A stretch of DNA of 64,000 nucleotides, from the NCBI GenBank assembly GCA_028826165.1, contig JAPDFW010000125.1, forward strand, positions 372,001 to 436,000, read 5' to 3'. This DNA comes from Anaeramoeba ignava BMAN. Taxonomy: Eukaryota; Protista; Anaeramoebae. The position numbers and the translations under genes were made by a program. Positions 7,655 through 39,208 of the stretch are shown here, piece after piece; the first letter of the stretch is position 1, and each line of letters starts with the position of its first letter. Under the pieces are notes generated by a model. It saw nothing but the letters and a program-made list of their open reading frames with translations. It made no database searches and was not told where the DNA came from.

Positions 7655-7758
7655 TTATAAAAAGAAAAAAAATGATTTTTGATTTTTCATTTTTTTCAAT
7701 AAAAATTTTTATTGAAATTAAAATCAAAATTAAAATTAAAATCAAAATCGAAAACTGT

Positions 7759-8097
7759 TTAAAATTGTTTTGAAAAAGATTTGGGATAAAAATCAAGTAA
7801 ATATGATCCTAAAATTGAATTTGAATTTAATTGATAAAAATCTTTTAAACCAATATATTCTTCAATATTTTCTTTTGTTAATTTTGTTTCATCAATTTTA
7901 TCATTATAAAGAAAATAAATTAATTGATTTATTGTTTCAAATGATTTTTCTGAATAAACATGAACTTGGTTTGATGAATCATTAACACTTAAAAACATTC
8001 CTTTAAATAATTCACTTCTTATTTGTAATATTAATTTATGAACTTTAATTTCTTTTTCTTCAACAATTATTGTAAAATCTTTAGTTTCATTTTTCAT
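7759..8097 (-). CDS. Duplicated BTB module (third BTB copy or remnant) after the ANK-BTB gene
   Basis: About 7770-8092 is a near-identical direct copy of ~8222-8543. It is one base out of frame with ORF 8087-10318. Confidence 0.6.
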   Translation of the reverse strand: MKNETKDFTIIVEEKEIKVHKLILQIRSELFKGMFLSVNDSSNQVHVYSEKSFETINQLIYFLYNDKIDETKLTKENIEEYIGLKDFYQLNSNSILGSYLLDFYPKSFSKQF

Positions 8098-10318: not shown

Positions 10319-10529
10319 AGTTGAAATTGAATTAAAAAATTGGATGATATTTGTTTTAATTGCTTTATAAATTTGTTCTAATTGATTTATGTTTTGAATT
10401 TGAATTTGATTTTGATTTTGATTTTAATCTGATTTTGATTTTGATTTTGATTTTTGATTTTGATTTTCTTTATTTTTGATTTTAATTTTGATTTTGAATT
10501 TGAATTTGAATTTGAATTTGAATTTTGAT

Positions 10530-11900: not shown

Positions 11901-12070
11901 AAAATTTTGATTTTTTATTTTGGTGGATAATGAATTTTTTGTTCTTTGATTTTGTTTTTGAATTTTTTTTTGATTTTGATTTTGATCAAAAATTCTTTTT
12001 CAAATTTGCTATTTTGATTTTTTAAAAAGATTTAAATTAGAAAAATATTATTCAAATTATTTTTATTATC

Positions 12071-12829
12071 TTACAAATTTTTGGAATTTGAATTTGATTT
12101 TGATTTTGATTTTGATTTTGATTTTGATTTTGATTTTGATTTTGATTTTGATTTTGATTTTGATTTTGATTTTGATTTTGATTTTGATTTTGAATTTGAA
12201 TTTGATTTGAATTTGAATTTAAATTTGAATATGAATTTGAATTTGAATCTGAATCTGATTTTGATTTTGAATTTGAATTTGAATTTGATTTTGAATTTGA
12301 TTTTGATTTTGATTTTGATTTTGATATTGATATTGATTTTGATTTTGATTTTGATTTTAATTTTGATTTTTGATTTTGATTTTGATTTTGATTTTGATTT
12401 TGAATTTGATTTTGATTTTGATTTTGATTTTGATTTTGATTTTGATTTTGATTTTGATTTTGATTTTGATTTTGATTTTGATTTTGAATTTGATTTTGAT
12501 ATTGATTTTGATTTTGATTTTGATTTTGATATTGATTTTGATTTTGATTTTGATTTTGATTTTAATTTTGATGTATTAAATAGATCTGAATCTGATTTTG
12601 ATATTGATTTTGATATTGATTTTGATTTTGAATTTGATTTTGATTTTGATTTTGATATTGATTTTAATTTTGATGTATTAAATAGATCTGAATTTGATTT
12701 TGAATTTGATTTTGAATTTGATGTATTAAATGGATCTGATTCTATTTCTGATTCTTTTTGTGTTTCAGGTTCTGAATTAAAATTTGAAGGAGGTTTTTGT
12801 GAATTTGAATTTGAATTGTTTGTGTTCAT
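12071..12829 (-). CDS. Possible N-terminal low-complexity (S/K-rich) start of the degenerate gene above
   Basis: ATG at 12829 preceded by TTTCATTT motifs. A unique N-terminus (MNTNNSNSNSQKPPSNFNSEPETQKE) runs into a (GATTTT)n microsatellite. Confidence 0.35.
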   Translation of the reverse strand: MNTNNSNSNSQKPPSNFNSEPETQKESEIESDPFNTSNSKSNSKSNSDLFNTSKLKSISKSKSKSNSKSKSISKSISKSDSDLFNTSKLKSKSKSKSKSISKSKSKSKSISKSNSKSKSKSKSKSKSKSKSKSKSKSKSKSNSKSKSKSKSKSKIKIKIKIKIKININIKIKIKIKIKFKIKFKFKFKIKIRFRFKFKFIFKFKFKFKSNSNSKSKSKSKSKSKSKSKSKSKSKSKSKSKSKSKSNSNSKNL

Positions 12830-12990
12830 GTTTTTTACGTTAAATTTAATTTGTTAATTGATTTGAAAAATGAAAAAAATGAAAAAAATGAAAAAATGGA
12901 AAAAAAACATTTTTGATAATTTCCTCTTTTTATTTTTCCTCTTTTTATTTTTCCTTTTTTTATTTTTTTCATTTTTTTTCTTTTTCAAAA

Positions 12991-14805
12991 ATGAATGAAA
13001 TTTTATTTTTTGGTCAAAATCACTCATCAAAACTTATCAAAAATAAACCAATTAAAATAACAAAACCAATTCAATTTAAATTTGAAAATGAAAATGAAAA
13101 TGAAAATGAAAAACAAATTAAACAAATTTCATCAAATTCTTTTGCAACAATTTTCCTTTTTGAAAATGGAAAAGCAATAGAATATTCAAATGAAAATCCT
13201 TCAAAAATCCAAATTGAAAATATTCAAAAAGTAACTGTTGGTTTTCAAAATGAAGCTATTTTAACAATAGAAGGAAATGTATTTGCCAAAGGAAATATTA
13301 TCAATCCAAAAAATCCAAATGAATTTATCAATATTTCATCATTAATTGAAGATAAAAATGATAGAATAATTGAAGATATTATTTGCGGAGGCACTTCAAT
13401 TTACTTATTAACTTCAAATCAAAATGCTTATGGAATTGGTTTTAATCACTCCTGTCAACTTGGTTTTGATTGTAAAACACTTAAAGAAACACAAAAACCA
13501 ATTTTAATGATGAAAAATGTTTCTAAAATATTTTCAGGAAATTCTTCAAATCATATTTTCATTTTGAATTTAAATCAAGAATTATTTGGATGTGGAAGAA
13601 ATGAGCATCGTCAACTTGGATTAGGAAAATCAAGAAAAGAATCACAAATCCCAAAATTAACCAAAGTCCAAAATATTCCAAAAGGCAAAATAATTGATAT
13701 TCAATTAGCAAATTCCTTTTCAATAATGATGATTGAAAATGAAGATGAAGAACAAAAAAGAAAACTTTATTCATGTGGAGCTTATGTGTATAATGGACTT
13801 AATCAATATGTTTATGAATTTACTGAAATCAAATCATATTTATTTGAAAATGATAATATTCTTGATTTTTCTGTTGGATTTACTCATACTTTACTTTTAA
13901 CTTCCAATTCAAAATTAATAGTATTTGGAGATAATGCATTTGGTCAATTAGGAACTGGAGATACAGAAACGAAATCAATTCCAATTCAAATTGAACTTCC
14001 TAAATTAAGATTTAATGAAAATATTTCTAATTATCATGTACTTTGTGGATATGAAAAATCATTTCTTTATTATTCTCCTTCTTTTTCCAATCTTGAAGAA
14101 GATTTGATAAAACTATTTAGAAGAAAAGAATTTTGCAATATTTCATTTAAAACCAAAAATGGAGAAATAATTGAAGCTCATAAATTAATATTGAAATATA
14201 GATTAAGAGATGAAAATGAAATTGAAAAACTTCAAGAAATTATTTCAAAAAAATCAATTAAAGAATCAAATCAAATATTTGAAATGATTTATTCAAATAA
14301 TTCCAAAATAAATCCAAAATTATATTCTGAAATTAAAGAAATTATAAATTCAAATGAAAAAATTGAAGAAACAATGAAAAGAATTTATTTAAATGAAAAT
14401 GAAAAAGAAAATGAAAAAGATTTTATAATTGAAAGAAAAGAAAAACAATATAAATTTCCTAAATTAATATTAATAATGAGAAGTGAATTATATCGAGGAA
14501 TGTTTTTATCTGTAACAGAAGATAAATCAAATAAAGTTACAGATTATAGTGAATTAAGTAATAAATCATTTCAAATATTTGAATATTGGATTTATTCAAA
14601 TCAAATTAAAGATGAAATTGAAATTACACAAGAAATCATTAATGAAATTAAAACAGGAATTGATTATTTTCAATTAAATCAAACAAATCCAAATTTATTT
14701 GATTTATTAATTAACAAATTTCAAATCAAAATCAAAATGGGTTCAAAATCAAAATCAAAATTAAAATTTAAACTTAAATCAAAACGAATATTCAATTCAG
14801 ATTAA
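12991..14805 (+). CDS. RCC1-repeat + tandem BTB protein (paralogue 1)
   Basis: The true ATG at 12991 (MNEILFFG) is shared with the paralogues. RCC1 repeats are followed by two BTB domains. Confidence 0.9.
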   Translation: MNEILFFGQNHSSKLIKNKPIKITKPIQFKFENENENENEKQIKQISSNSFATIFLFENGKAIEYSNENPSKIQIENIQKVTVGFQNEAILTIEGNVFAKGNIINPKNPNEFINISSLIEDKNDRIIEDIICGGTSIYLLTSNQNAYGIGFNHSCQLGFDCKTLKETQKPILMMKNVSKIFSGNSSNHIFILNLNQELFGCGRNEHRQLGLGKSRKESQIPKLTKVQNIPKGKIIDIQLANSFSIMMIENEDEEQKRKLYSCGAYVYNGLNQYVYEFTEIKSYLFENDNILDFSVGFTHTLLLTSNSKLIVFGDNAFGQLGTGDTETKSIPIQIELPKLRFNENISNYHVLCGYEKSFLYYSPSFSNLEEDLIKLFRRKEFCNISFKTKNGEIIEAHKLILKYRLRDENEIEKLQEIISKKSIKESNQIFEMIYSNNSKINPKLYSEIKEIINSNEKIEETMKRIYLNENEKENEKDFIIERKEKQYKFPKLILIMRSELYRGMFLSVTEDKSNKVTDYSELSNKSFQIFEYWIYSNQIKDEIEITQEIINEIKTGIDYFQLNQTNPNLFDLLINKFQIKIKMGSKSKSKLKFKLKSKRIFNSD

Positions 14806-15290
14806 AATTTAAAATTAAAATTAAAATTAAAATTAAAATTAAAATTAAAATTAAAATTAAAATTAAAATTAAAATTAAAATTAAAATTAAAATTAAAAAT
14901 TAAAATTAAAATAAAATCAAAATTTAAATTTAAAATTAAAATTAAAATTAAAATTAAAATCAAAATTAAAATTAAAATTAAAATTAAAAATTAAAATTAA
15001 AATTAAAATTAAAATCAAAATTAAAATTAAAATCAAATTTAAAATTAAATTTAAAATTAAAATCAAAATTAAAATTAAAATTAAATTTAAAATTAAAATT
15101 AAAATTAAAACTAAAATTAAAATCAAAATTAAAATTAAAATTAAAATTAAAATTAAAATTTAAATTAAAATTAAAATTTAAATTAAAATTAAAATCAAAA
15201 ATTAAATTTAAAATTAAAATTAAAATTTAAATCAAAATCAAAATTAAAATTAAAATTAAAATTAAAATCAAAATTAAAAATCAAAATCAA
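14803..15290. repeat. (AAAATT)n microsatellite spacer
   Basis: Hexamer array between paralogues 1 and 2. Confidence 0.9.
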
Positions 15291-15331
15291 AATTTCAAAA
15301 ATCATTTTTTCATTTTTTTTCTTTTTCAAAA

Positions 15332-17125
15332 ATGAATGAAATTATATTTTTTGGTTTAAATAAAAAACCAAAACTTTTCAAAAATGAACCAGATAAAATA
15401 ACAAAACCAATTCAATTTAAATTTGGAAATGAAAATGAAAATGAAAATGAAAATGAAAATGAAAATGAAAAACAAATTAAACAAATTTCAACAGGAAGTT
15501 TTTCAACAATTTTCCTTTTTAAAAATGGAAAAGCAATAGAATATTTAAGAAAAAATGATTCAAATCAAAAACCTCAAAAAATCCAAATTGAAGAAAATAT
15601 TCAAAAAGTAACTGTTGGCGATGAAAATGAAGCTATTTTAACAAAAGAAGGAAATGTATTTGCCAAAGGAGAAGATATTAATCCAAATAATCCAAAAGAA
15701 TTTATCAATATTTCATCATTAATTGAAGATACAAATGATAGAGTAATTGAAGATATTGTTTCTGGATATAATTCAATTTACTTATTAACTTCAAATCAAA
15801 ATGCTTATGGAATTGGTTTTAATCATTATGGCCAACTTGGTTTTGATTCTCAAACACTTGAAAAAACAGAAAAACCAATTTTAATGATGAAAAATGTTTC
15901 TAAAATATTTTCAGGAAATGACTCAGGTTCATTTTTTCTTTTAAATTTAAATGAAGAATTATTTGGATGTGGATATAATTTTTATGTTCAACTTGGATTA
16001 GGAAATTCAAGAAAAGAAGAATGGAAAATCCAAAAATTAACCAAAATACAAAATATTCCAAAAGGTAAAATAATTGATATTCAATGTGGATGGGCTCATT
16101 CAATAATGTTAATTGAAAATGAAAATGAAAATGAAAATCCAAAAAGAAAACTTTATTCATGTGGATATTCCTCATTTAATGGACTTGGCAAAAATGAAAA
16201 TACTTGTGAATTTACTGAAATCAAATCATCTTTATTTGAAAATGATGATGATATTCTTGATTTTTCTGTTGGAAATAAACATACTTTGATTTTAACTTCC
16301 AATTCAAAATTAATTGGATTTGGAGATAATTTTTATGGTCAATTAGGAACTGGAGATACAAAAACGAAATTAATTCCAATTCAAATTGAACTTCCTAAAT
16401 TAAGATTTAATGAAAATATTTCTAATTATCATATTTCTTGTGGATATGAAAAATCATTTCTTTATTCTCCTCTTTCTTTTTCCAATCTTGAAGAAGATTT
16501 GATAAAATTATTTAGAAGAAAAGAATTTTGTAATATTTCATTTAAAACCAAAAATGGAGAAATAATTGAAGCTCATAAATTAATATTGAAATATAGATTA
16601 AAAGATGAAAATGAAATTGAAAAACTTCAAGAAATTATTTCAAAAAAATCAATTAAAGAATCAAATCAAATATTTGAAATGATTTATTCAAATAATTCCA
16701 ATATAAATCCAAAATTATATTCTGAAATTAAAGAAATTATAAATTCAAATGAAAAAATAGAAGAAACAATTAAAAGAATTTATTTAAATGAAAATGAAAA
16801 TGAAAAAGATTTTATAATTGAAAGAAAAGAAAAACAATATAAATTTCCTAAATTAATATTAATAATGAGAAGTGAATTATATCGAGGAATGTTTTTATCT
16901 GTAACTGAAGATAAATCTAATAAAGTTACAGATTATAGTGAATTAAGTAATAAATCATTTCAAATATTTGAATATTGGATTTATTCAAATCAAATTAAAG
17001 ATGAAATTCAAATTACACAAGAAATAATTAATGAAATTCAAATTGGAATTGATTATTTTCAATTAAATCAAACAAATCCAAATTTAATTGATTTATTAAT
17101 TAACAAATTTAATAATCAAAATTAA
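15332..17125 (+). CDS. RCC1-repeat + tandem BTB protein (paralogue 2)
   Basis: 597-aa intronless ORF, collinear with its neighbours. Confidence 0.9.
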   Translation: MNEIIFFGLNKKPKLFKNEPDKITKPIQFKFGNENENENENENENEKQIKQISTGSFSTIFLFKNGKAIEYLRKNDSNQKPQKIQIEENIQKVTVGDENEAILTKEGNVFAKGEDINPNNPKEFINISSLIEDTNDRVIEDIVSGYNSIYLLTSNQNAYGIGFNHYGQLGFDSQTLEKTEKPILMMKNVSKIFSGNDSGSFFLLNLNEELFGCGYNFYVQLGLGNSRKEEWKIQKLTKIQNIPKGKIIDIQCGWAHSIMLIENENENENPKRKLYSCGYSSFNGLGKNENTCEFTEIKSSLFENDDDILDFSVGNKHTLILTSNSKLIGFGDNFYGQLGTGDTKTKLIPIQIELPKLRFNENISNYHISCGYEKSFLYSPLSFSNLEEDLIKLFRRKEFCNISFKTKNGEIIEAHKLILKYRLKDENEIEKLQEIISKKSIKESNQIFEMIYSNNSNINPKLYSEIKEIINSNEKIEETIKRIYLNENENEKDFIIERKEKQYKFPKLILIMRSELYRGMFLSVTEDKSNKVTDYSELSNKSFQIFEYWIYSNQIKDEIQITQEIINEIQIGIDYFQLNQTNPNLIDLLINKFNNQN

Positions 17126-17500
17126 AATCAAAATTAAAATTAAAATTAAAATTAAAATTAAAATTAAAATCAAAATTAAAATTAAAATTATAATTAAAAT
17201 TAAAATTAAAATTAAAATTAAAATTAAAATTAAAATTAAAATTAAAATTAAAATTAAAATTTAAATTTAATAATCAAAATTAAAATCAAAATTAAAATTA
17301 AAATTAAAATTAAAATTAAAATTAAAATTAAAATTAAAATCAAAATTAAAATTAAAATTAAAATTAAAATCAAAATTAAAATTAAAATTAAAATTAAAAT
17401 TAAAATTAAAATTAAAATCAAAATCAAAATTAAAATTAAAATTAAAATTAAAATTAAAATTAAAGTCAAAATTAAAATTAAAATTAAAATTAAAAATCAA
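17120..17500. repeat. (AAAATT)n microsatellite spacer
   Basis: Hexamer array between paralogues 2 and 3. Confidence 0.9.
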
Positions 17501-17547
17501 AATCAAAATTTCAAAAATCATTTTTTCATTTTTTTTCTTTTTCAAAA

Positions 17548-19362
17548 ATGAATGATTGTTTATTTTTTGGTTTAAATTATTCACCAAAAATTATCAAAAA
17601 TGAACCATATAAAATAAAAAAACCAATTCAATTTAAATTTGAAAATGAAAATGAAAATGAAAATGAAAATGAAAAACAAATTAAACAAATTTCATCAGGT
17701 TATTCTGGAACAATTTTCCTTTTTAAAAATGGAAAAGCAATAGAATATTTAAATGACGAAAATGATCCAAATCAAAATCCTTCAAAAATCCAAATTGAAG
17801 AAAATATTCAAAAAGTAACTGTTGGTTATCAAAATGAAGCTATTTTAACAAAAGAAGGAAATGTATTTGCAAAAGGAAAAGATATTAATCCAAATAATCC
17901 AAAAGAATTTATCAATATTTCATCATTAATTGAAGATACAAATGATAGAATAATTAAAGATGTTGTTTCTGGATATAATTCAATTTACTTATTAACTTCA
18001 AATCAAAATGCTTATGGAATTGGTTTTAATGAATATGGTCAACTTGGTTTAGATTTTGAAACACTTGAAAAAACACAAAAACCAATTTTAATGATGAAAA
18101 ATGTTTCTAAAATATTTTCAGGAAATTCTTCAGATTGTGTTTTTCTTTTAAATTCAAATCAAGAATTATTTGGATGTGGATTAAATAGATATGGACAAAT
18201 TGGATTAGGAGAATCAAGAAGAAATGAAACAAGAATCCAAAAATTAACCAAAATCCAAAATATTCCAAAAGGTAAAATAATTGATATTAAATGTGGAAGT
18301 TATCATTCAATAATGTTGATTGAAAATGAAATTGAAAATGAAATTGAAAATCAAAATCCAAAAAGAAAACTTTATTCATGTGGATATTCCTCATTTAATG
18401 GACTTGGCAAAATATATCAAGATACTTATGAATTTACTGAAATCAAATCATATTTATTTGAAAATGATAATATTATTGATTTTTCTGTTGGAAATAGACA
18501 TACTTTAATCTTAACTTCCAATTCAAAATTAATTGGATTTGGAGATAATTATTATGGTCAATTAGGAACTGGAGATACAGAAACAAAATTAATTCCAATT
18601 CAAATTGAACTTCCTAAATTAAGATTTAATGAAGATATTTCTAATTATCATGTACTTTGTGGATATGAAAGAACATTTCTTTATTATTCTCTTTCTTTTT
18701 CCAATCTTGAAGAAGATTTGATAAAATTATTTGAAAGAAAAGAATTTTGTGATATTTCATTTAAAACCAAAAATGGAGAAATAATTGAAGCTCATAAATT
18801 AATATTGAAATATAGATTAAATCAAAATCAAAATCAAAATGAAATTGAAAAACTTCAAGAAATTATTTCAAAAAAATCAATTAAAGAATCAAATCAAATA
18901 TTTGAAATGATTTATTTAAATAGAATAATAAATCCAAAATTATATTCTGAAATTAAAGAAATTATAAATTCAATTGAAAAAATTGAAGAAACAATGAAAA
19001 GAATTTATTTAAATGAAAATGAAAAAGATTTTATAATTGAAAGAAAAGAAAAGAAATATAAATTTCCTAAATTAATATTAATAATGAGAAGTGAATTATA
19101 TCGAGGAATGTTTTTATCTGTAACAGAAGATAAATCTAATAAAGTTAAAGATTATAGTGAATTAAGTAATAAATCATTCCAAATATTTGAATATTGGATT
19201 TATTCAAATCAAATTAAAGATGAAATTGAAATTACACAAGAAATAATTGATGAACTTCAAATTGGAATTGATTATTTTCAATTAAATCAAACATATCCAA
19301 ATTTATTTGATTTATTAATTAGGAAATTTAATAATCAAAATCAAAATCAAAATCAAAATTAA
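17548..19362 (+). CDS. RCC1-repeat + tandem BTB protein (paralogue 3)
   Basis: 604-aa intronless ORF, collinear with its neighbours. Confidence 0.9.
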   Translation: MNDCLFFGLNYSPKIIKNEPYKIKKPIQFKFENENENENENEKQIKQISSGYSGTIFLFKNGKAIEYLNDENDPNQNPSKIQIEENIQKVTVGYQNEAILTKEGNVFAKGKDINPNNPKEFINISSLIEDTNDRIIKDVVSGYNSIYLLTSNQNAYGIGFNEYGQLGLDFETLEKTQKPILMMKNVSKIFSGNSSDCVFLLNSNQELFGCGLNRYGQIGLGESRRNETRIQKLTKIQNIPKGKIIDIKCGSYHSIMLIENEIENEIENQNPKRKLYSCGYSSFNGLGKIYQDTYEFTEIKSYLFENDNIIDFSVGNRHTLILTSNSKLIGFGDNYYGQLGTGDTETKLIPIQIELPKLRFNEDISNYHVLCGYERTFLYYSLSFSNLEEDLIKLFERKEFCDISFKTKNGEIIEAHKLILKYRLNQNQNQNEIEKLQEIISKKSIKESNQIFEMIYLNRIINPKLYSEIKEIINSIEKIEETMKRIYLNENEKDFIIERKEKKYKFPKLILIMRSELYRGMFLSVTEDKSNKVKDYSELSNKSFQIFEYWIYSNQIKDEIEITQEIIDELQIGIDYFQLNQTYPNLFDLLIRKFNNQNQNQNQN

Positions 19363-25814: not shown

Positions 25815-26360
25815 TTAAAATATTTTTTTTTTTATAAAAAAAAATAGAAAGAAAATAAAAAAGAAAAAAAAGAAATAAAATTTGGTTTTTTGATTGCTTT
25901 GAAGTTTTGTTGTTTTTTCTTTAAAAAAAAAAAGAAAAAGAAAAAGAAAAGAAAAGGAAAAGTAAAATGAAAAAAAAATAAAAAAATGAAAAAATGAAAA
26001 AATGAAAAAATAAAAGCAAAAAAAAAAAAAAATTTTAATTTAAAAAAATAAAAAAAAAATCTTTTTCTTTTTTTTCCTTTTATTTTTCTATTAAAATTTA
26101 ATAAATAAAATGAAATGACGTTACTAGATCAACAGTTTTCTTCAATTTTTATAAAAGAAAATTATTTAATTTAAATTTAATTAAAAAAAAATTTTTTTTT
26201 CTCCTTTTATTTTTTTTTTATTTTTTTTCTCCTTTTTAATTTTTTAATTTAAATTTTTTTTTTTTTTTCATTTTTTTTTTATTTTTCTTATTTCTTATTT
26301 CTTATTTAAATTTTATTTGTTTGTTTTTTTTTTTTCAATTATCTTTTTAATTATTTTTTA

Positions 26361-29300
26361 ATGGAGTAATTTATATAAAAAAAAAAGCAAAAAACAATTT
26401 TAAAACAATTTAAAACAATTTAAAACAAATTTAAAACAATTTAAAACAAATTTAAAACAATTTAAAACAATTTAAAACAATTTAAAACTATTTAAAACTA
26501 TTTAAAACTATTTAAAACAATTTAAAACTATTTAAAACAATTTAAAACAATTTAAAACAATTTAAAACAATTTAAAAACAATTTAAAACAATTTAAAACT
26601 ATTTAAAAATTATTTAAAATTATTTAAAACAATTTAAAACTATTTAAAACAATTTAAAAACAATTTAAAACAATTTAAAACAATTTAAAACAATTTAAAA
26701 CAATTTAAAACAATTTAAAACAATTTAAAACAATTTAAAACAATTTTAAAACAATTTAAAAATTATTTAAAACAATTTAAAACTATTTCAAAATTATTTA
26801 AAACAATTTAAAACTAATTTAAAATTATTTAAAACAATTTAAAACAATTTAAAACTATTTAAAACTATTTAAAAACAATTTAAAACTATTTAAAACAATT
26901 TAAAACAATTTAAAACTATTTAAAACTATTTAAAACAATTTAAAACTATTTAAAACAATTTAAAACTATTTAAAACAATTTAAAACAATTTAAAACAATT
27001 TAAAACTATTTAAAACAATTTAAAACAATTTAAAACAATTTAAAACAATTTAAAACAATTTAAAACAATTTAAAAATTAAAAAAATTTAAAACTATTTAA
27101 AACAATTTAAAACTATTTAAAAACAATTTAAAACAATTTAAAACAATTTAAAACAATTTAAAACAATTTAAAACAATTTAAAACAATTTAAAACAATTTA
27201 AAAATTATTTAAAACAATTTAAAACAATTTAAAACAATTTAAAACAATTTAAAACAATTTAAAACAATTTAAAACAATTTAAAACAATTTAAAACAATTT
27301 AAAACTATTTAAAACAATTTAAAACAATTTAAAACAATTTAAAACAATTTAAAACAATTTAAAAACAATTTAAAACAATTTAAAAACAATTTAAAACAAT
27401 TTAAAACAATTTAAAAACTATTTAAAACAATTTAAAACAATTTAAAACAATTTAAAACAATTTAAAAACAATTTAAAACAATTTAAAACAATTTAAAACA
27501 ATTTAAAACAATTTAAAACAATTTAAAACAATTTAAAACAATTTAAAACAATTTAAAACAATTTAAAACAATTTAAAACAATTTAAAACAATTTAAAACA
27601 ATTTAAAACAATTTAAAAACAATTTAAAACAATTTAAAACAATTTAAAATTATTTAAAAATTCAAAAATCTAAAAATCTAAAAATTTAAAAATTCAAAAA
27701 TTTAAAAATTATTTAAAAATTATTTCAAAATTTCTTATTAATATCAATCTTTTTACATTTTCTTCCAAAAAAAAGTTTCAATTCAGTCTTTTATTATCAA
27801 TCACAATTAAAAAATTGTTATCCAATCAATTTTGGAGGAAATGAAAAAAGTCTATCAAACATTTCACAGAAAAGATTCAAGAACAAATTATTTGAACCAT
27901 ACTCAACATTTCCGTTTATGGATTCGGAAATAGGAATGATATATAAGAAATACGAGGAAAAAACAAGTAAAATTGAGATAATTTTAGCATCAATTCAGAT
28001 TCTTGTTTCAAAATTTGTTTACACAGAATCACCAGTGTCTTTGGCAGTATCTTTGCAAAACAACTCGTTTAATCTGCATGAAATATGTGTTACAGAAACC
28101 AATCCAATTCCAATCACAATCGAAAACCGCCATGAAATTGAAACACTTGAAAAAATGCTTGAAAAATTTAACGACAAAACAAAAGAGATCCAAAAAATTT
28201 CTCATTTATTTTCGCAGTTAGTTTTCGATTACGAATCAAATTACTCAGTTTCCAAGCTTGACTTCCCGTTCAGAATACTCGTTGTTTATGACGAGCCAGA
28301 AGTGATTGAGAAATTATCCGAAAGTTCAGTCATTTTAAGACATTTCAAAAAGGATTTCCAGTTCTCAAGAAACACAGAACAATCAGAAGACATTCAGCAA
28401 CAGAAGAAGGATCTTGTTGCCTTTTATTCCAACCAATTTCCTGCAAAACAGTATTTCGATTTGATTTTTGCTTTTGTTGACGAGGAGAAAATCAATCCGT
28501 CAAACAAAAGACCGTTTTATTTCAGCACAATTCTTTATAACAACCTCAAATTCGAAGACAGTTTTATCGGCAATCTCCATTTCTATTTGTCAAAACTTCT
28601 GGAGAACATTTCAAACCAGATGAAAAACAACACATCCATTTTGGTCTCCTCATTGGATCGAATTGAAGACTACGAAAAACAGAACATTCTTCGCAAATGG
28701 AACGGCAAAGGCGAAGAAATCATTGCAAAATCAGAAAAGGTGTCCCAAGTCGGGATTCCGTTGATATTCCGGAAAATAGTGAAGGAGCGCAAGGAGTCCA
28801 TTGCAATCCGCTCTGACACAGCAAACATTTCGTTTATTGCGCTTGAAAACGCGTCGAATTTATTTGCGGCATATCTCCAGCAGAACTTGAAAATGCAGCC
28901 AGGCACCTTTGTCGGCGTTGCAATGAAACATTCAGTAAACACGATCATCGCGCTTCTTGCCATTTTGAAAATTGGATGTGGATATCTGCCGCTGGATAAC
29001 GGACTGAGCAAAAAATTATCTGCCAAAATTGTCAAGGCATCAAACACTAAGTTTGTTTTCACCGACGAGCAGAGTCTTGACAAGTTTTTTGAAATCAGGA
29101 TCCAACTCAAACCACATTTGGTCGAGGTTGTTGATCTTTCGCGGCAGAATTTCGACGACATTCTGCAAGAATGCAAAGAGAAAAACTTGCAAAAATCAAA
29201 AATCAAGGTGACTGGAAGAAACTACATGGTGATGCTGTATTCTTTCATCCGCAGCCACAAACCGCAATTCTTCATGGTTTCCCATTCGAGCATCATTCTC

Positions 29301-32300
29301 AAGTCGCTTTCAATAAACCCGCCAATTAACATGTGCAATATCACATTACTCCATTCATCGCTCGCTTCTCATCAATCACTTATAGAGTTATGGGGCACAA
29401 TCATTAACGCGGGACGGATCATTATATCCGAATCCACAAACGTTTTCTCGCCCAACTTCGCGTCGTTGGCGCAGAGACACTCAATAAAAGTTGTTTTTCT
29501 TTCGTCTTATTTATTCCAGCAAATTGTTGATAATCACGTCAACAATCCCTATTTGAGAGAGAAGCGCAAGGATCGCAATGCAAAGAGCCTCAAAGACTCT
29601 GATGACGCTCATTCCGAAAACAATTTCCCATTTAGCATTCTGGAACTGCTTGTTTTATACGGCGAACCCATCGAGTACAATTTAATGGACAAGTTTTTCA
29701 AGCTGAATTTACTTCCCGAAAAAATTGTTTTTACTTTCGCTCTCACGGAAGTATCGTCAATCTGCACGAATCTTGTGATATGGGATCGCAAGACGTTATT
29801 CCAGACAAAGCAAAAGATCGCGCATTCCCAATCCGACGAAAGCATGCAAGCGGAAAAGGAAAATGGACCAACCGACGAGATAGTGCAGCAAACAAATCTT
29901 GTGAACAACGCAAATATACGCTACTACATCAACGAGTACAAGACCAGCACAAACTATTTCCCGTTGGGAACGCCATCAAACGACTGCAGAATATATGTTT
30001 TGAATAAAAAACTCGAGCTCGCACCGATTGGCTCGGTTGGCTCAATATTCATTTCAAGTCGCACTTTGTCTGCCCCTGTCCCGATTGTCGAGAAAAAAAA
30101 GGAATTGCAAACTCAATCCCCAAAACAAGTCCAACCACAAAGACAACTGCCAAAATCATTTGTCCCGAATCCGTTCCAAGATGTTGATTCGGGAAAATTT
30201 CTCATCAACACAGAAGTCAAAGGAAGTATTGTTTCTTCAGGAAACCTTGAATTTATGGAATACTCAGATCCAAGAGAAATCAAGCTCACATACTCAAACG
30301 GAGACTTGGTCAGTATTTCTGTGATTGAAAGTGTACTCAAGAAAAACTACAAAATCTCCCAAGTTTCTGTTGTCGCAAGAGATCTTCATTTATATAACAG
30401 AAAAAGATTGATTGCGTACGTTGTTCCAAACACAAAAAAACCGATCACAGTTGATGAGCTTCGCAGATCTGTTCAGGAACATCTCCCGAGCCAAAATGTC
30501 CCTGACATCTTTGTTGTTGTCGACGAGACAGACAGCAGTAAAACCGATTCCAATGGTGTTCTTGATCGGATGAAGATCATTCGACACTACGAAATGATGA
30601 ACTCTGAGAAGAAGCGTAAAATTCGGGATCGCTTCTCACGCACCAAGAGCGAAGAAATCACGAAGTATCCGCGAAACCCAACAGAAGAGTTTCTGTGTCA
30701 GGTGTTTGCAAGTGTTTTGGACTACGAACAGGTTGGGATTGATGACAACTTCTTCTCGCTCGGCGGCAACGAAATAGCAGCAAATCGTATTGCTCTCAAA
30801 TGCATTGACGCAGGTTTCCAAGTTTCTGTTGAGAAAATTATCAAATTCCCTGTGATTTGCGATCTCTCTGAATATATTATCGAAACAATGAATTTTTTCC
30901 AGACAAATTTGGCGTTATCAGCAAACCAGAAATGGTTTTCTCAGCAGAAATTCGGTAATGTGAACCAATCGAGTCGCGCGATTTTTGTGCGGTTCAACAG
31001 CTCTACAAACATTGAAACACTGAGAAAAGCATACTTTATGATTCTGAAACAACACGAAATTTTCTCTATAAAATTCCCTAATTTAAAACCAGCAATTTCG
31101 CCAATTTCTCAAGAAAATAAGAAAAAAATAAAGCAAATGTTCACCATCACACGCTTTGATCACAAAAGCACATCCCCTTCAGAAATTGTCAAGCAGTGCC
31201 TGCAGATCCAACAGACACTGGACATTGCAAAGGGTCCTTTAGTGAAATTTGTAATTTTTGTGGATCAAAGTCTCGAGAATAGCGACGATGCCGTGAAGGA
31301 CAAAAATGATGCGCAATTTATCTTGAGTAGCGATAACACAGACACCCTTGATGATATCCAAGACAGCGACGAAGACACCAAGCCTCAAAACCACATGTTC
31401 TCGATGTTTCTTTTCCACAACTTGATCATTGACACAAATTCCATCCGGACTTTCCTGGAAAATCTTCACCAGAATTACACAAACATCTCAACAATGAAAA
31501 AGAAAATATACCGCAATTTGCAGCCTTCCTTCTCGTCTTACTACGAGTGGATCAACGAGGAAACCAACCTCGAAATCTCGACAAACGCCTACGAGTTCTG
31601 GAAGAAGACTGCGCAGAAAAAACCGAATTATGTCAAGCCACTTCCAAAGGATTTTTCAACACCAATCGACAACCTTTATGAGTATTCAAGCAACATCAAG
31701 GTCTCGTTTGACTACGAGAAGTCGCATCTGCTCTACGTTAAAACAGCGCAAAAAAACCAATACGAATTCACGGATATCCTGATGACAGCCGTTGCTCTCG
31801 CTCTTCATGATTGGACAACAAGTATTTATAATTTTATTCATTTGATCGAGTTTCCAAAAAACGTTCCCGAAAAATTTCGCAAATTGGTCTGTCCCAAGGA
31901 GAACAGAATTCCTGTGCTGATTGGGTTCACACAACCGAACGTTACGGCAGATCTTGTCAAGTCGCTCGCGCTTGTTAAGCAGCAATTGACAGAATTCCGC
32001 GAGAATATCCACCAATACAAAAGATTGATGTACTACAACACATTAAATCTTCCAAACGTAGCGGAAACATTTGAGGATTTAATTCAATACGACACAGTCG
32101 TAAACCCAAAGGAAAAACAAACCCCTCTCAGACGCCAATCGTCTGTCAAAGACCAAATCAAACGCACAGAAAGCAAATCCAAGGATACTGAGATTCTCAA
32201 ATCTCCGCTCGGTTTTGAAGTCCCTGATCACGATATCCATCCCATAGAGCTCGAATCTGATTCTCTAAGCGATGACGGAAAAGAAGGCCGCGAAAGGTCC

Positions 32301-34988
32301 CAGTCAAACAGACACGGAAATGCAGACGACGACACAATCTCACAGGAAATTTCCTCCGATGAAGACGATTCCCGTCTCAAAATGCCCGATAATTACCAGG
32401 CAGAATTACAAACTCTTGAGGAATCCGAAATCGGATTCACTTTTCTCGGAGATCTTGAGTTTAAGTCCTTCCCTCTTGGATCGGTATCTATTGACAAAGT
32501 CACCGATCTCAAACGCATCAGAAAACTCAACAATGAAAAATCAGCAATGCCTTATTCTGTCGAGATCATAAGCTACATTCAGGATGAGTGCATCTATCTC
32601 AAGATCGTCTACAACAAGAAAATGTACAAACCAGACACCATCAAGAACTTCTCGCGCAAAGTGATGAAGATTCTTCTGAAATTATCCAAAAAACTTGGTG
32701 AAACAATCCCCACTTTACCTCCACAAGAAAATACAAACGAAAACAAAGAAAATGTGCCAAAGGGAAGATTGACTGTAGATTTTCCGTTGGCAAAGAACCT
32801 CACAAACGCAAGCATTCAAGAACTATTTGATGAAAACAACTCCATCGAGAACATTGTAACTCCTCTTCAACTTCACCAAGAAATGCTGCGATTCTTTCTG
32901 CGAAAAGATCAGATAGTCAAACGGCACTTGTGCCAACAACTCATGCTCCCGTTTTTCACGACCAAGATCGATACGCAACTTTTCCAAAAAGCATGCTCAA
33001 CATTCATCAACAACTGCACGTTTCTCAAATCATATTTTATTCGCAATCCCACAAAACAATCCAATATTCTCCAAGTTGTGCAGAACCAAGTTGAAATCCC
33101 GTTCAAATTCTCGAGCTTCGCAAAAGAAAGCGAGCCAATGAAGGAGCTAAGCATCAGCAAGCTTCTCAGCGCCGAGCAACAGAAGCAATTCAAATTCTCT
33201 CATCCTCCCTTGTTTAGTATCACACTCACAAAAGTTGCCGCACACGACTCAATCAATGAGTATTTGCTTACCTTTTCTTTCGAACCATTCATGCTCGATT
33301 CTCGCTCAATTCCTTTGCTTATTCGCGGCATTTTCTATCAATATTTATCCTATTATTATTCATTTAACGCATTCGATCCAAATCCTGAGAACGAAAATTC
33401 CCAACCGCAAATCCCCAAAGACGCGCCAAAAAATCTTGACAGTTCACTCAAAATGCATTCAAAAAGTTCGTTCTTAAACTTTCTCAAAGCAGAGCAAGCC
33501 ATTCCAATCACAACCGTGAAGAAATTTTTCCAATCAATGCTTCATGGGATTGATTTCTCATTTCCAATGATTCAATCTCGTTCATCAGAGCAAGAAAATT
33601 CAATTGAAAAACCACAAGAAAACGAACAAACCCAAAAAGATGATTTTATCATTCTCGATCAAAAACAAGACTCTCAAAAACTGGGTGTTTGCACGCAAAT
33701 ACTGGATCGAATACTCAATACTCCATCAACATTACTCGAGAAAAAGAACACCACTGATGTTGATGTCAACGGACAGATTCTTTTCGACAACGTCAAGTTC
33801 AAAGAACTGAATCATGTGATCACATCTCTCGAATACCACACAATCAACGAAACACTCCGCTCAAACAGCATCAATCTCAACGCGTTCCTTCATTTTGCTT
33901 GGGCATTTACCTTGTACTCAGTCACTCACAAATCAACACTCTATTTTGGCACAGAAGCCACAGGAAGAATCCCTGAGGCTGGACAAGGCAACGAGCTCAC
34001 AGTCGGGATGTTCAGCAAGATCCTCCCGTTCAAGATTGTTCTTCAAAAGGATATCAAATTGTTCAGTCTTCTTCAGCACATCCAGTTGAATCTTGTCAGA
34101 ATCAATGAGTACCACAAAGCAACAACAACCAAAATTCGTCGCTGGATGGAATTGGGAAGGAAATACAATCTCTTCTCAGGCGGTGTCATCATCTACGATT
34201 CAATGCATTCGCCAGAAGAGATTTGCCGTTTAAAGGATCTTGGGAATGACAGCTACGATTTGCAACTTGATTTTTCAGAAAATTTCCCAAAAGCAAAAAT
34301 TGCCTTTTCAAACATAAAAATCCGAAGAGCGTTCCAGTTCCCGCTGTCATTGATAATAGATCCCTCTTGCGACGAATTGATGGTGCGGATTGTCTACGAC
34401 GAAGACAAATTCCCCAAATCACTTGTCGCCAAACTATTCAATAATTACATCAAAATAATCACAACAATCGGATTAAAACACAAAAATTTTTTCAACGAAA
34501 TCAATTACTTCATCGAAGAACTTATTGTCAAGGACATCAACAAGGATCTTTATGCCAATGAAAAACCCAAGAAAAGAAGAGTCAAGAACAAAGCAAATCT
34601 CGCTCAATTCAATCCTGATCACGTTTTCAAAATGGGGTTTCTTACTCAACAAAGAATTGCCCCTTCAAAATCAAAATGGAAAAAAAGATGGTTCGTTCTT
34701 AAAAATGACAACAGATTGTATTACTTTAAGACACGAAACTCTCCTCATCTATGCGGTGTTATTCAACTTACAAATGCCTCCATTGAACCTCTTTCTGATT
34801 CAAAAAAGAAAAACTGTTTCCAAATTAAAGACGATCAACAAACTCACTTGATTTCTGCTGAATCTTCTGATTTAATGAGAGATTGGATTAAGGAAATCAA
34901 AAATATTTTAACTAGGCAAGACAACGATGAAGATGATGAAGATTATGATGATGATGATTATCAGGAATTCGAAGAATTTTCAGATTAA
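26361..34988 (+). CDS. Degenerate NRPS-like protein (partial C - A - T - E - C) fused to a C-terminal PH domain and acidic tail, ~2,405 aa
   Basis: A domain: ALLAILKIGCGYLPLD, RIYVLNKKLELAPIGSVG, KRLIAYVV. Carrier domain: PRNPTEE.LC.VFA.VL...QVGIDDNFFSLGG. E domain: LSANQKWF, QQTLDIAKGPLVK. Second C domain: AWAFTL...FGTEATGR...VGMF..ILP. PH domain: KMGFL...KWKKRWFVL...LYYFK...MRDWIKEI. Putative 5-nt first exon ATGGA (26361-26365) and intron 26366-27775 in frame with the 27918 ORF. Confidence 0.85.
26393..27660. repeat. 10-bp tandem repeat (AAACAATTTA) filling the first intron of the NRPS-like gene
   Basis: More than 100 copies with CAA/CTA/TTA variants, between GTAATT at 26366 and AAG at 27775. 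Confidence 0.9.
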
Positions 34989-35147
34989 AAAATTTTTTTT
35001 CTTTTTTCTTCTCTTTTCTTTTCTTTTTTTTTCAATCATTTTTATGATTTTGATGTAATGTTGATTTCATTTTTAAAATCAACAATCTTTACTATTTTTT
35101 TGATAACCAAAAAAAAAAATAATTTATTTTTTTTTCTCACGAAAATC

Positions 35148-35735
35148 ATGGGAAGGAGTATTTTCATTTCGAAAATCCCGCCCACCCTTTCGATCGCCAT
35201 CATTTACGAACTCTTATCTGAATACACACCCAGACAGGGCTACATAAGAGGCTCATACGGATTTATCAAAGTCAACAACCACGAGGAAGTGATTAAGAAA
35301 TACTCAAAAATCTGGCTACATGAAGGACCAATAACAATGGAGATCGCCACGGGCAAAAGAAAAGGGAAAAAAAATAACGGTCACAAAAAACAAAGAAAGA
35401 GGAGAAAGAGAAGTTATAAAAAAAAAGACAAGAAGAAAGGAGACACCACAGAAAGAAACAGCACAACGAAAGCAACAGCACTACACCCCGACCAGATAGA
35501 CAAGCAAGAAGGAGGAGTACACAAACATACCAATAAACAGGGAACAGAAGAAGTCAACAACACCAACAAGGAACCTATAAAAAGAAAAATACAAAACATG
35601 AAGAACCCACTACAAAAACCCCTCATCATTCAAGGGGAAAACCAAAAAACGAAGAACAGTATAAGACACATCGCTAACGAAATTGCAGAAACATGGACCA
35701 GAGAGACACCACACTTCAAAATAAAAGATAAATGA
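35148..35735 (+). CDS. LINE ORF1, RRM-like RNA-binding protein with a basic tract
   Basis: RNP2-like SIFISKIP and RNP1-like GSYGFIKV, then a K/R-rich region. ATG at 35148. Confidence 0.75.
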   Translation: MGRSIFISKIPPTLSIAIIYELLSEYTPRQGYIRGSYGFIKVNNHEEVIKKYSKIWLHEGPITMEIATGKRKGKKNNGHKKQRKRRKRSYKKKDKKKGDTTERNSTTKATALHPDQIDKQEGGVHKHTNKQGTEEVNNTNKEPIKRKIQNMKNPLQKPLIIQGENQKTKNSIRHIANEIAETWTRETPHFKIKDK

Positions 35736-35742
35736 ACAAGAT

Positions 35743-38700
35743 ATGAAAGCCTTTATCCAAAAATCTCTAAGCTACTCATACCTATTAACATACGGAACAT
35801 ACCTGAAACAAAACACAAAAAAAGAGCAACTGGAACTCTTCGAACACATGAGAACAGAACTGGAAAGACATCACATAGAAATAGACACAAAAACCAAAAA
35901 GACAGTCAAATATAACAGCAGCCAAGAATATATAAACCTCCAGGAAGGAAAAATTCTCAACAGCCACCACAAAATAAAAATACAAAAAACCAACATTGGC
36001 ATGCTCGAAATAGCCAATGCGCTGGACAAAAACATCAATGGAAGAGTAGTAAAGAAAGGCAAAAATCTAATCGAGATATGGGACAACAAAAAATCAATAG
36101 ATGCAACATTCAAAAAACTGGAAAGGAAAAAAACCTTAATTAAAAAAGGAACAAGAATAACAAGAATAGACACCCAAAACAACTCCACAGAAACGATACG
36201 AGGTTCAAGCTCACAGATCAGCAAGTACTTCATAAAAGTAGCATCATGGAATATAAACGGATTAATACAAAAGGACAAAGAAAAAGAAATAGAAGCTACA
36301 CTCCTAAAGCACGGCATAGATGTGGCTCTGATCCAAGAGACACACATGAAAAAAAAAAAATACTTCCAATACTACAACACTATCCTAAAACCTAGCTATG
36401 GTACACTAGGACCACAAGGAGGACTAAACATACTATACAAAAAATTCTACAAACCCATAGTACAAGAGATAGAAAACGAAGATAAAGACATTCAGATAAT
36501 CAAAATAGCGGACCTACACCTAGTGAACATCTATAAAAGGCACGATCGAGCAGAGGATATCATCCAACAACTACAAAACGTATTGGACCAGTACGGCCGT
36601 GAAAAAACGATTATAGCGGGAGACTTCAATATGACCGCAAAAACACTACAAGAAAAACTCAAACTTGGAGAATTCAAAAGAATCCGGAACAAAAACTACT
36701 CAAGGAATAACAGAAATATAGATCACCTCCTGACAACAGCACAAACGAGAAGTTACTCTCGCACAATCAGATCTGAGCTATCGGACCACAATTGCATCTA
36801 CAACATATGTGAGATCAAAGCAAATGCTGAATTCAAAACCAAAGCCCACATCACAGACTCAAGGAAATTTCAACGGCAATTTGTAAACTGTGTGCAAAAA
36901 GACAACTTTAAAATCAAAGAAACCACAATGAAAAAACTAGAAAGAAAATGGGAAACAAAAAGTAGAATTACAATCACTAACAAAGTACCCAAAGCAATTC
37001 AAGAGATAATCGCACAGCTACAACTAGATCCGAACAAAAAATATAAACTAGCACAGCAGATCAAAAAACAATTCAATAATATGCTCCAATCTACAAACAT
37101 AGACCAACAAATAGAACACAATGAATGGAAAACAATAAAAAAAATTAGAGGCACAAACAAAACTATCCAAACACAAAACAAAAGACTCGAAGAAGAATTC
37201 AGCAAACTCATAGATGGAACCAACATAAGGCCAGACCCCCAAACTCTCCACCAAATCACCCAACTACCGAACCCTCTCCCACCACCCCAAGAACCCCAAC
37301 AAATACAGATCCCGAGAAGCGAAGAATACATCACAATCCAACTAATCCAAAACACGATCACCAAAATGGCAAACAAAGCGGTGAGAGGATTCGACAAAAT
37401 CGAGAACTACAAAAACACACAGAAGGAAGTGGATGAAGAATATGAAGCACTACTAAATACACTAAGACTAGCATTTCTCAATTGGAGAGACAACCCAACA
37501 GAAGCACAACTTAAATATATTAAGGCAAACAACAAAATTTTCATCCACAAAGGAGGCGAAACATGGCCGGCCGCAAACTACCGCCCAATAGCAATCAGTA
37601 ACGCACTCCCCAGAATCTTCCTGAAAATAATTTACTCCAACCTCGAACAGGAATGGGACAAAATAGCAAAGACACAATACGGCTTCAGGAAGCTAGTAGA
37701 CACGAGAATTGCAACGATAGACCTCCTGGAAAAGTACAACACAATGGATTCCCCAACCATCATGACACTAGACATAACCAAATGCTTCGACAACGTTAAC
37801 CATCAGCTAATAAGGGAAACCATCAAGAAATTTGTGGACCACAAACCAACCCAGGAATTTCTAATTCAATACTATGCAGGAGATGGATACGGAACTTTCC
37901 AGGGAGACCCACTGTCGCCTATTATATTTGCATTCACAAGCCACTACCTAATTGGGGAACTGGAAAAGACAACGGCACACACCCAAATGTTTGCCGACGA
38001 CGTAATCATGCTCCTCCAGGAATCAATCGATGAAACGAAAACCAAAAAAGTACACGAACTGATTGCAATATACCGTCAATTCGGTCTAAAGATAAACGAA
38101 TCCAAGACCATCATCACTAAGAACCTCAACGAGGTAAAATACCTAGGAATCCATCTAGAAAGAACCACTCACATCAAAAACAACCTACAAAAAGCAAACG
38201 CGACCTTTGAGAAATACATATACATCTTTACAAATCCCACACTCTCGAACGCAGTCAAACTGCAAATTTACGAAGCGATGATTCTCGCGCAAACATACTA
38301 CGGTACGGAAATATTCAACATAACACCAGAAGACATCAAGAAAATAGACACACAAATCAACTCACATTTATGCCAACTCCTGAGAATCAACCGACACTCC
38401 CCCACCTTGATCTATCGAACAGATGCCAAAATTTGGAGTGCCTACTATACCATAAACAAAAGGAAATGGAAACTCCAACAAAAACTTCGAAAACTAGGAC
38501 ACCCACTGGCAGAGAACCTCAAGTTCACTCCAGAAAACAACAAACAAGATGAAATATGGAAAACAAGGAACCAAAACCAACTCAAACTTCTCATCTCAAA
38601 ATCAATCAAAGAACAGATCCAAAATTCAGAATCCAAAAAAACAAAAAAATACTATAATATGATAAAAGATGCAACCCACTTAGAAAGACAAAAATACCTA

Positions 38701-39015
38701 AAATGGAACTCATCAACAACACTCCTCAAAATCAGAATGAGATCAAACGGCCTAAACGGTTATAGCTACAGATGGAATAAGAACAACCAAAACAAAACTC
38801 CTGACTGTCCCTTCTGTGACGGAAACAAAGAAAATCTAAAACACGCCTTACTCAAATGCCCTCAATACGATCAGATCAGACCCCAAAAAATTCGGAACGA
38901 AAGAGACCTCAAAGTGATCATAAACAAAGCAACCACAGAACAAGAATCCTTCAACACACTAACCCAATTTATGAATGAAATAATGAAAGAGAGAGCGAAG
39001 AGGGTTGGCCAATAA
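35743..39015 (+). CDS. LINE ORF2: AP endonuclease, reverse transcriptase, CCHC zinc knuckle
   Basis: APE: SWNINGL, IQETH, AGDFN, IDH, SDH. RT: NYRPIA, QYGFR, LDITKCFDNV, QGDPLSP, FADD, GLKINESKT, YLG. Knuckle: CPFC-x8-H-x4-C. Confidence 0.95.
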   Translation: MKAFIQKSLSYSYLLTYGTYLKQNTKKEQLELFEHMRTELERHHIEIDTKTKKTVKYNSSQEYINLQEGKILNSHHKIKIQKTNIGMLEIANALDKNINGRVVKKGKNLIEIWDNKKSIDATFKKLERKKTLIKKGTRITRIDTQNNSTETIRGSSSQISKYFIKVASWNINGLIQKDKEKEIEATLLKHGIDVALIQETHMKKKKYFQYYNTILKPSYGTLGPQGGLNILYKKFYKPIVQEIENEDKDIQIIKIADLHLVNIYKRHDRAEDIIQQLQNVLDQYGREKTIIAGDFNMTAKTLQEKLKLGEFKRIRNKNYSRNNRNIDHLLTTAQTRSYSRTIRSELSDHNCIYNICEIKANAEFKTKAHITDSRKFQRQFVNCVQKDNFKIKETTMKKLERKWETKSRITITNKVPKAIQEIIAQLQLDPNKKYKLAQQIKKQFNNMLQSTNIDQQIEHNEWKTIKKIRGTNKTIQTQNKRLEEEFSKLIDGTNIRPDPQTLHQITQLPNPLPPPQEPQQIQIPRSEEYITIQLIQNTITKMANKAVRGFDKIENYKNTQKEVDEEYEALLNTLRLAFLNWRDNPTEAQLKYIKANNKIFIHKGGETWPAANYRPIAISNALPRIFLKIIYSNLEQEWDKIAKTQYGFRKLVDTRIATIDLLEKYNTMDSPTIMTLDITKCFDNVNHQLIRETIKKFVDHKPTQEFLIQYYAGDGYGTFQGDPLSPIIFAFTSHYLIGELEKTTAHTQMFADDVIMLLQESIDETKTKKVHELIAIYRQFGLKINESKTIITKNLNEVKYLGIHLERTTHIKNNLQKANATFEKYIYIFTNPTLSNAVKLQIYEAMILAQTYYGTEIFNITPEDIKKIDTQINSHLCQLLRINRHSPTLIYRTDAKIWSAYYTINKRKWKLQQKLRKLGHPLAENLKFTPENNKQDEIWKTRNQNQLKLLISKSIKEQIQNSESKKTKKYYNMIKDATHLERQKYLKWNSSTTLLKIRMRSNGLNGYSYRWNKNNQNKTPDCPFCDGNKENLKHALLKCPQYDQIRPQKIRNERDLKVIINKATTEQESFNTLTQFMNEIMKERAKRVGQ

Positions 39016-39208
39016 AAAAAAAAAATATAAAAAAAAAAAAAAGCCAACACCATTCAAAAAAAAAAAAAAAAAAAAAAAAATAATTTTCGATCCAAAAAAA
39101 ATTAAATAATTTTTCAAATTAAATTAATAAAAAAATAACAACAAAAACAAAATATTTTTTTTTCTCATTTATTTTTTTTCATTTTTTTCATTTTTTTTAT
39201 TTATTAAA

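Follow-up and report, generated by a model that had tools for sequence, protein, structure and literature searches.

A stretch of 64,000 nucleotides from the protist Anaeramoeba ignava BMAN (contig JAPDFW010000125.1, or C115 below, positions 372,001 to 436,000 of the forward strand; hereafter the window) carries an apparently dead nonribosomal peptide synthetase (NRPS) module that is fused to a pleckstrin homology (PH) domain. The host gene of this module, M0811_02855 (KAJ5067667.1; contig positions 398,361-406,988, equal to window 26361-34988, + strand), encodes 2405 amino acids (aa) annotated as 'hypothetical protein', in the order half condensation (C) domain, adenylation (A) domain, carrier (T) domain, epimerization (E) domain, DCL-type C domain and PH domain, so that both the homology and the order of the NRPS domains are retained. 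We infer from its motifs that activity has been lost, and it is very likely that M0811_02855 is not a working NRPS. We propose that it is probably a membrane-recruited pseudoenzyme scaffold or adaptor, in which the PH domain would bring the protein to a membrane and the dead module would serve as a binding platform.

The protein was aligned along its length with a profile of 16 bacterial A-T-E-C modules, in which each altered motif falls in the column of its canonical counterpart; all seven motifs named in the original prediction lie where it had placed them. In the A domain, YSFIRSHKPQ (window position 29238) replaces the A3 loop (S/T)(S/T)G(S/T)TGxPK, A7 reads INTEV (30204), A8 reads EYSD, and A10 reads NGV (30552), with loss of its catalytic Lys. 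The roles of the A3, A7, A8, A10 and His motifs, among them binding of ATP phosphate and ribose and the driving of adenylation, have been reviewed (PMC10510592). The carrier motif reads GGNE (30762), where Glu (30771-30773) stands instead of the Ser for phosphopantetheine. In the E domain, the His motif reads HNLIID (31416) and the EGHGRE motif IEFPKN (31845), while the DCL domain has EPFMLDS (33282), with its second His changed to Pro. The claim that every key motif is altered thus holds for A3, A7, A10, the carrier and the E and C domains, but it goes too far for A5 (FALTE, 29736), where Thr and Glu are retained, and for both HHxxxD motifs, which keep their structural Asp.

Much of this loss is shared with five further A. 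ignava genes that have this architecture (contigs C68, C8, C101, C114 and C59). None of the six paralogs has the A3 Lys, the Asp of the A7 (S/T)GD, the A8 Arg or the Glu of EGHGRE; the second His of the DCL motif is Pro or Ser in all six, that of the E motif is kept only in C114, and the structural Asp of both motifs is invariant. A Lys aligns at A10 in C101, C114 and possibly C8, but C101 and C114 should not bind ATP productively despite it, because they lack A3 and A7. At the carrier position the paralogs read GGDS (C68, C59), GGNS (C101, C114) or GGNH (C8). When 19 catalytic or ligand-binding positions chosen beforehand were compared with other positions conserved in bacteria, M0811_02855 retained 3 of the 19, and the six paralogs together kept 28/113 of the catalytic positions (25%) against 474/967 of the others (49%; Fisher p = 7.5e-7, which is overstated since the paralogs are related).

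All the Pfam domains expected from the original prediction scored above their cut-offs (Condensation, 6.6e-47; AMP-binding, 2.5e-27; AMP-binding_C; PP-binding; PH, 1e-19). Among solved structures, bacterial NRPSs such as TycA, DhbF and McyB come closest to the body of the protein, and cytohesin PH domains to its end. In the profile alignment, the protein begins within a condensation domain, at its C-terminal lobe, and the linker typical of an E-to-DCL junction is present. As predicted, acidic inserts occupy loops of the E domain, at ~31269 (38 aa) and ~32043 (114 aa); further inserts lie in the pseudo-A domain at ~29532 and ~29787. A DCL-type C domain normally precedes an A domain. Because the last C domain of M0811_02855 is of this type in the tree, the PH domain stands in place of the next A domain or module, and not, as had been suggested, of a terminal TE or R domain. 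The architecture has neither a release domain nor an intact start domain, which favors a role outside peptide synthesis. Fold comparison, made at the whole-fold level on models of the A core and the DCL-PH region, indicates that the predicted folds of the A core and the DCL domain remain NRPS-like: the A core model, although modest (predicted local distance difference test score [pLDDT], 61), matched NRPS A domains with Z of ~30 and a root mean square deviation of 3-4 Å, and the DCL-PH model (pLDDT, 80.6) matched the condensation domain of SrfA-C with a template modeling (TM) score of 0.83.

The gene start at 26361, as originally given, is correct. From 27776 onward, a spliced RNA-like contig from sequencing run X3 agrees with the genome, and upstream of that point it continues with sequence ending at 26365; its 63-nucleotide (nt) loose end before 27776 matches 26336-26365 over the 30 letters displayed. 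Since the contig leaves the genome at 27776 and resumes at 26365, 26366-27775 is a spliced intron, and at least 58 nt of 5' leader lie upstream of the coding part of exon 1. The 2405-aa NCBI protein is an exact match to Met-Asp plus the exon 2 frame. The uninterrupted open reading frame (ORF) of more than 7 kb in the prediction is accounted for by the second exon; counted from the first in-frame ATG, it runs over 2356 codons (window 27918-34988, + strand). Exons were searched and aligned separately, never as a joined spliced model. The features of the gene, all on the + strand, are as follows.

26361..26365, +: coding part of exon 1 (ATG GA), from the loose end of the X3 contig and the NCBI protein start, Met-Asp-Phe
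26366..27775, +: intron, phase 2, 1410 nt, GT..AG, from the X3 contig, the NCBI protein and paralog comparison
27776..34988, +: exon 2, 2403 codons plus stop, 7.2 kb, from the frame and the NCBI protein
27777..28700, +: half a condensation domain (C-terminal lobe), lacking the N-lobe and HHxxxDG, from the profile alignment
28770..30578, +: pseudo-adenylation domain, from Pfam, alignments and predicted fold; A3 loop, A7 Asp, A8 Arg and A10 Lys gone
30690..30878, +: carrier (T) domain with GGNE, from Pfam, motif position and alignment
30915..32717, +: pseudo-epimerization domain, from alignments and tree
32835..34547, +: pseudo-condensation domain of DCL type, from profile alignment, tree and structure model
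34563..34592, +: KPKKRRVKNK, a polybasic patch of the linker that leads to the PH domain, from sequence
34623..34907, +: PH domain, from Pfam and alignment
34920..34985, +: acidic C-terminal tail ending EFEEFSD, present only in M0811_02855 among the paralogs

The intron after ATG GA lies at the same position in M0811_02855, C101 and C114, and is implied for C68 by its transcript start. In M0811_02855 it consists almost entirely of a 10-11-nt tandem repeat (~26390-27660; ~1.3 kb), and in C68 and C114 the same first intron holds other AT-rich repeats.

M0811_02855 is transcribed, and its NRPS and PH parts are joined on single contigs in both DNA and RNA-like runs. Besides the X3 contig, the EukProt transcript protein P0001 carries the last 1920 residues, from A3 to PH, in one ORF (A-T-E-C-PH) with six substitutions. 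A single contig from run X4, which belongs to a different study, spans the gene and differs from the genome at 20 positions over 5.7 kb; as five of the six EukProt substitutions recur in X4 and the sixth lies beyond the compared stretch, the two were counted as one source. A DNA contig from run X1 begins at 27718 and, being 7295 letters long, would extend past the stop codon. Between the X4 and genome alleles, 15 differences are silent and 5 are replacements (p = 2e-4 against the transition-site expectation), giving a ratio of replacement to silent polymorphism (pN/pS) of 0.09, or 0.17 when only transitions are counted; all 20 differences (window 28391-33318) are transitions. C101 and C114 differ with a ratio of nonsynonymous to synonymous substitution (dN/dS) of 0.14 overall, 0.07-0.28 per domain and 0.08 in the T domain. 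M0811_02855 is under purifying selection, and the transcription, the linkage to the PH region and a dN/dS away from 1 that the original prediction depended on are all borne out. A further EukProt protein, a347219_194 (P0104), has a C101-like start and a C114-like end and is probably a chimeric assembly.

The PH fold has its PDB matches in cytohesin, PLEKHA6 and DAPP1 and is the most conserved domain of the family, with 21/98 columns invariant against ~8% in the A and DCL domains; the T domain has 15/75 and the half-C, the least conserved part, 4/158. The phosphoinositide-binding signature of the Grp1/cytohesin type consists of a Lys in β1 and (K/R)-x-R in β2. The β2 K-x-R is retained in all six paralogs, and the β1 Lys is kept in C68, C8, C101 and C59, with Gln in M0811_02855 and Glu in C114. 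The E-F-x-x-F of the acidic tail resembles adaptin-ear-binding motifs, a possible lead. Both the acidic tail and the lost carrier Ser were correctly noted in M0811_02855, but neither is a trait of the family: the tail occurs in no other paralog, and four of the six paralogs keep the Ser.

The six genes share 24-36% identity (71% between C101 and C114) and form one clade in the A, E and C domain trees. Their PH domains are mutual best matches among the ~30 PH domains of the genome (49-69% identity, against at most 44% to others, over full length). Since the six share one clade in the A, E and C trees and have the closest PH domains, a single fusion preceded the duplications. In the trees, the E-like domain of the family falls among bacterial E domains and its final C domain among DCL domains, in agreement with the prediction, and the domains are of bacterial NRPS type. 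A lateral origin of the module would fit this grouping; no donor could be named. Descent from the intact C-A-T-C-A-T-R NRPS of the same genome was considered and rejected as unsupported: a simple-model tree joined the A domains of the family and the intact NRPS, both rich in FYMINK residues, but the join disappeared under a mixture model (quick tree), and E and DCL domains are both missing from the intact enzyme. As assembled, C59 shows two breaks of the frame within its A domain (L015:3380-3660), with no obvious intron.

No member outside A. ignava was found in word-based protein searches, a 50%-representative library, metagenome contigs, prokaryote genomes or the ESM Atlas, which is weak evidence of absence because the same searches missed paralogs C8 and C59 and, once, M0811_02855 itself; orthologs may exist in A. 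flamelloides. Only A. ignava proteins in the representative library matched across DCL-PH, the metagenome contigs gave 31 PH-only loci with NRPS sequence near none of them, and the ESM Atlas returned plain bacterial C domains only. The prokaryote genomes gave a single PH exon match, on an evidently eukaryotic contig. That contig (OZ219972.1, L061:5911-6216), titled as a Stappiaceae metagenome-assembled genome, has a cytohesin-like PH exon among microsatellites and is probably host contamination.

Taken together, transcription, selection, linkage, the reduced retention of catalytic residues (25% versus 49%) and the bacterial-type domains support the original idea of a captured synthetase retained as a non-enzyme. 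We propose that an internal part of a multi-module bacterial NRPS (C-lobe, A, T, E and DCL) entered the Anaeramoeba lineage, where it was fused once to a host PH domain and acquired a 5' intron. Its adenylation, epimerization and condensation chemistry would have been lost, and duplication would have given rise to the six genes. In M0811_02855, the PH domain, aided by the basic patch, would recruit the protein to an anionic or phosphoinositide membrane, where the still-folded NRPS domains would form a large, articulated platform to which host proteins bind, much like the dead X-domain of glycopeptide NRPSs. Several observations weigh against it. Without the β1 Lys in M0811_02855 and C114, high-affinity binding of phosphoinositides would not be assured. 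The order of a whole module, including the T domain, is retained, which seems more than a simple scaffold needs. Four of the six paralogs keep the carrier Ser, which could still be primed, the genome encoding one Sfp/AASDHPPT-like transferase. Finally, some C domains function without the second His (PMC10510592).

A ligand sensor is a rather doubtful alternative, in which an amino acid, amine, bacterial peptide or acyl-thioester would bind in the dead pocket of the A domain or in the E/C tunnel, and the native movements of A-core, A-sub and T would relay the signal to a membrane complex, perhaps at the symbiosome or food vacuoles. The A8 hinge region and A-sub are retained, six divergent paralogs could cover different ligands, and the six proteins, at 24-36% identity, have the same residue at 3/9 positions of the specificity code (239 Ile, 301 Tyr and 330 Ser), against a background of 8%, with Glu at position 235 in five of the six. 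This enrichment is weak (p of ~0.03, an estimate), however, position 235 is His in M0811_02855, and Tyr301, which is Gly, Ala or Ser in bacterial enzymes, could simply fill the pocket and stabilize the core; the invariant residues would fit a remodeled and a filled pocket alike. It is unlikely that all six proteins are receptors whose remodeled pocket detects bacterial metabolites or peptides and whose domain movements transmit a signal at a phosphoinositide membrane, for instance that of the symbiosome. Alternatively, the family could be a membrane-anchored carrier system, in which the host transferase would prime the T domain, another adenylating enzyme would load it in trans, the dead domains would dock or shield the cargo, and M0811_02855 (Glu) and C8 (His) would be non-loadable regulatory or decoy members. 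The GGDS and GGNS motifs of the other four paralogs and the well-conserved T domain (15/75 columns invariant; dN/dS of 0.08) speak for it, as does a genome with one phosphopantetheinyl transferase, two intact C-A-T-C-A-T-R loci and one more carrier-bearing gene. We regard it as quite unlikely: it is inapplicable to M0811_02855, no active domain follows downstream in cis, and the carrier Ser is dispensable, because it was lost twice among six paralogs.

New chemistry on the old fold, in which the E or DCL domain would run a noncanonical reaction such as acyl transfer to lipid from a rebuilt site placed at the membrane by the PH domain, seems very unlikely. In five of the six paralogs the C-site carries E-[PS]-F-x-x-D, a motif of the family, and not random residues, and enzymes of the C-fold without the His exist (PMC10510592). 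Against this, C8 lacks the Glu, the family alignment has no invariant His, and the invariant residues specific to the family are few and scattered. The catalytic motifs of cyclization domains are also absent from the family alignment. A decaying NRPS or an assembly chimera is scarcely credible and is largely refuted already: long branches, the two frame breaks of C59 and a retroelement directly downstream of M0811_02855 would suit such an origin, but they are set against a 7.2-kb open exon, splicing, transcripts that span the NRPS and PH parts, a pN/pS well under 1 and the presence of this fusion at six loci. A membrane-recruited scaffold or adaptor remains our preferred reading.

The genes that flank M0811_02855 in the window are eukaryotic (RCC1-BTB, ankyrin-BTB, importin and ChAPs), so the contig is not from a symbiont. 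An array of RCC1-BTB genes with the ankyrin-BTB gene occupies 6011-19362, and a similar array lies near C59. GC content at third codon positions is 0.46 in M0811_02855 (27918-34988) and 0.45 in C68, with 0.05-0.08 in the neighboring RCC1-BTB genes, 0.31-0.38 in importin and ChAPs, and 0.15 in the intact NRPS pair. An intact non-LTR retroelement, a long interspersed nuclear element, lies at 35058-39080 (+ strand), starting within ~150 nt of the M0811_02855 stop; it has an ORF1 of 225 aa, an ORF2 of 1090 aa with endonuclease, reverse transcriptase and zinc finger, and an A-rich tail, and no second full-length close copy was found in the genome. The X3 RNA-like contig extends 5408 letters past 33600 and would end at ~39008, so the retroelement may be read through from M0811_02855.

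The genomes of Anaeramoeba were reported to contain several non-ribosomal peptide synthases whose products might influence the bacteria that colonize the symbiosome (PMC11550330). In that study, antiSMASH region 7.1 spans 378,361-426,988 (PMC11550330, Supplementary Data 7), which is M0811_02855 with 20 kb on either side, and regions 27.1, 57.1, 69.1 and 105.1 correspond to C68, C101, C114 and C8. Five of the seven type-NRPS regions of A. ignava BMAN are accordingly dead PH fusions; offered as possible sources of symbiont-selecting products, they cannot make peptides by known chemistry, an ability left to the C-A-T-C-A-T-R pair with intact motifs (regions 55.1 and 140.1). The two loci of this pair, C99 (L016:2280-8330 and L018:377-2392) and C47 (L017), are near-identical, contain an intron and lie near contig ends, and the frame of C47 stops ~180 codons early as assembled. 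C59 is missing from the antiSMASH table and may be an assembly error or a pseudogene. A further carrier domain (C97:216314-216472) sits in a 1209-codon frame whose position matches the antiSMASH NRPS-like region 53.1. The main text of the genome paper (PMC11550330) never mentions pleckstrin, and the locus tag M0811_02855 was not found in the portions of its supplements covered here. M0811_02855 is thus already catalogued, but only as 'NRPS' or 'hypothetical protein': the original view that the architecture is uncatalogued stands for the dead sites and the PH fusion, of which we found no description, and fails for the locus, which antiSMASH lists.

Bacterial A-T-E/DCL modules (TycA-TycB, GrsA, PvdL E2-C3) resemble the A. 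ignava protein in domain order, E-to-DCL linker and folds at 18-25% identity, but the latter has all catalytic centers altered, a half-C start, a PH end, an intron and loop inserts. PRIP/PLCL and MTMR5/MTMR13 likewise combine a PH domain with a dead enzyme core and are membrane-associated regulators; their cores, however, are lipid enzymes native to eukaryotes, with active paralogs that they can regulate, whereas the A. ignava core is a bacterial secondary-metabolism module. The X-domain of glycopeptide NRPSs (Tcp12, PDB 4TX2/4TX3) is an inactive C-fold that recruits proteins (PMC10510592). It is a terminal, P450-binding domain of another C class within a working NRPS, while in A. ignava the whole module is dead, there is no assembly line in cis, and the last C domain groups with DCL domains in a tree that included no X-domain, so that the likeness is an analogy only. 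The Ax domains of PyrG and Dol15D-M2 have a broken A3 and a probable structural role, and that of Dol15D has Glu235 (PMC13643306, PMC10510592), but their modules also contain an active adenylating domain with which they pair, and the A. ignava family lacks such a partner. Dead single domains in working NRPSs and PH-bearing pseudoenzymes are therefore known, while our literature search for an NRPS-PH fusion or an NRPS pseudoenzyme of this kind found no report of a whole dead A-T-E-C module joined to a eukaryotic membrane-targeting domain. If the proposed scaffold role is true, M0811_02855 would clearly exemplify a secondary-metabolism enzyme that was gained laterally and has become cell-biological hardware. 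The six paralogs, some of which have the carrier Ser or the PH Lys while others lack them, are a natural set for comparison.

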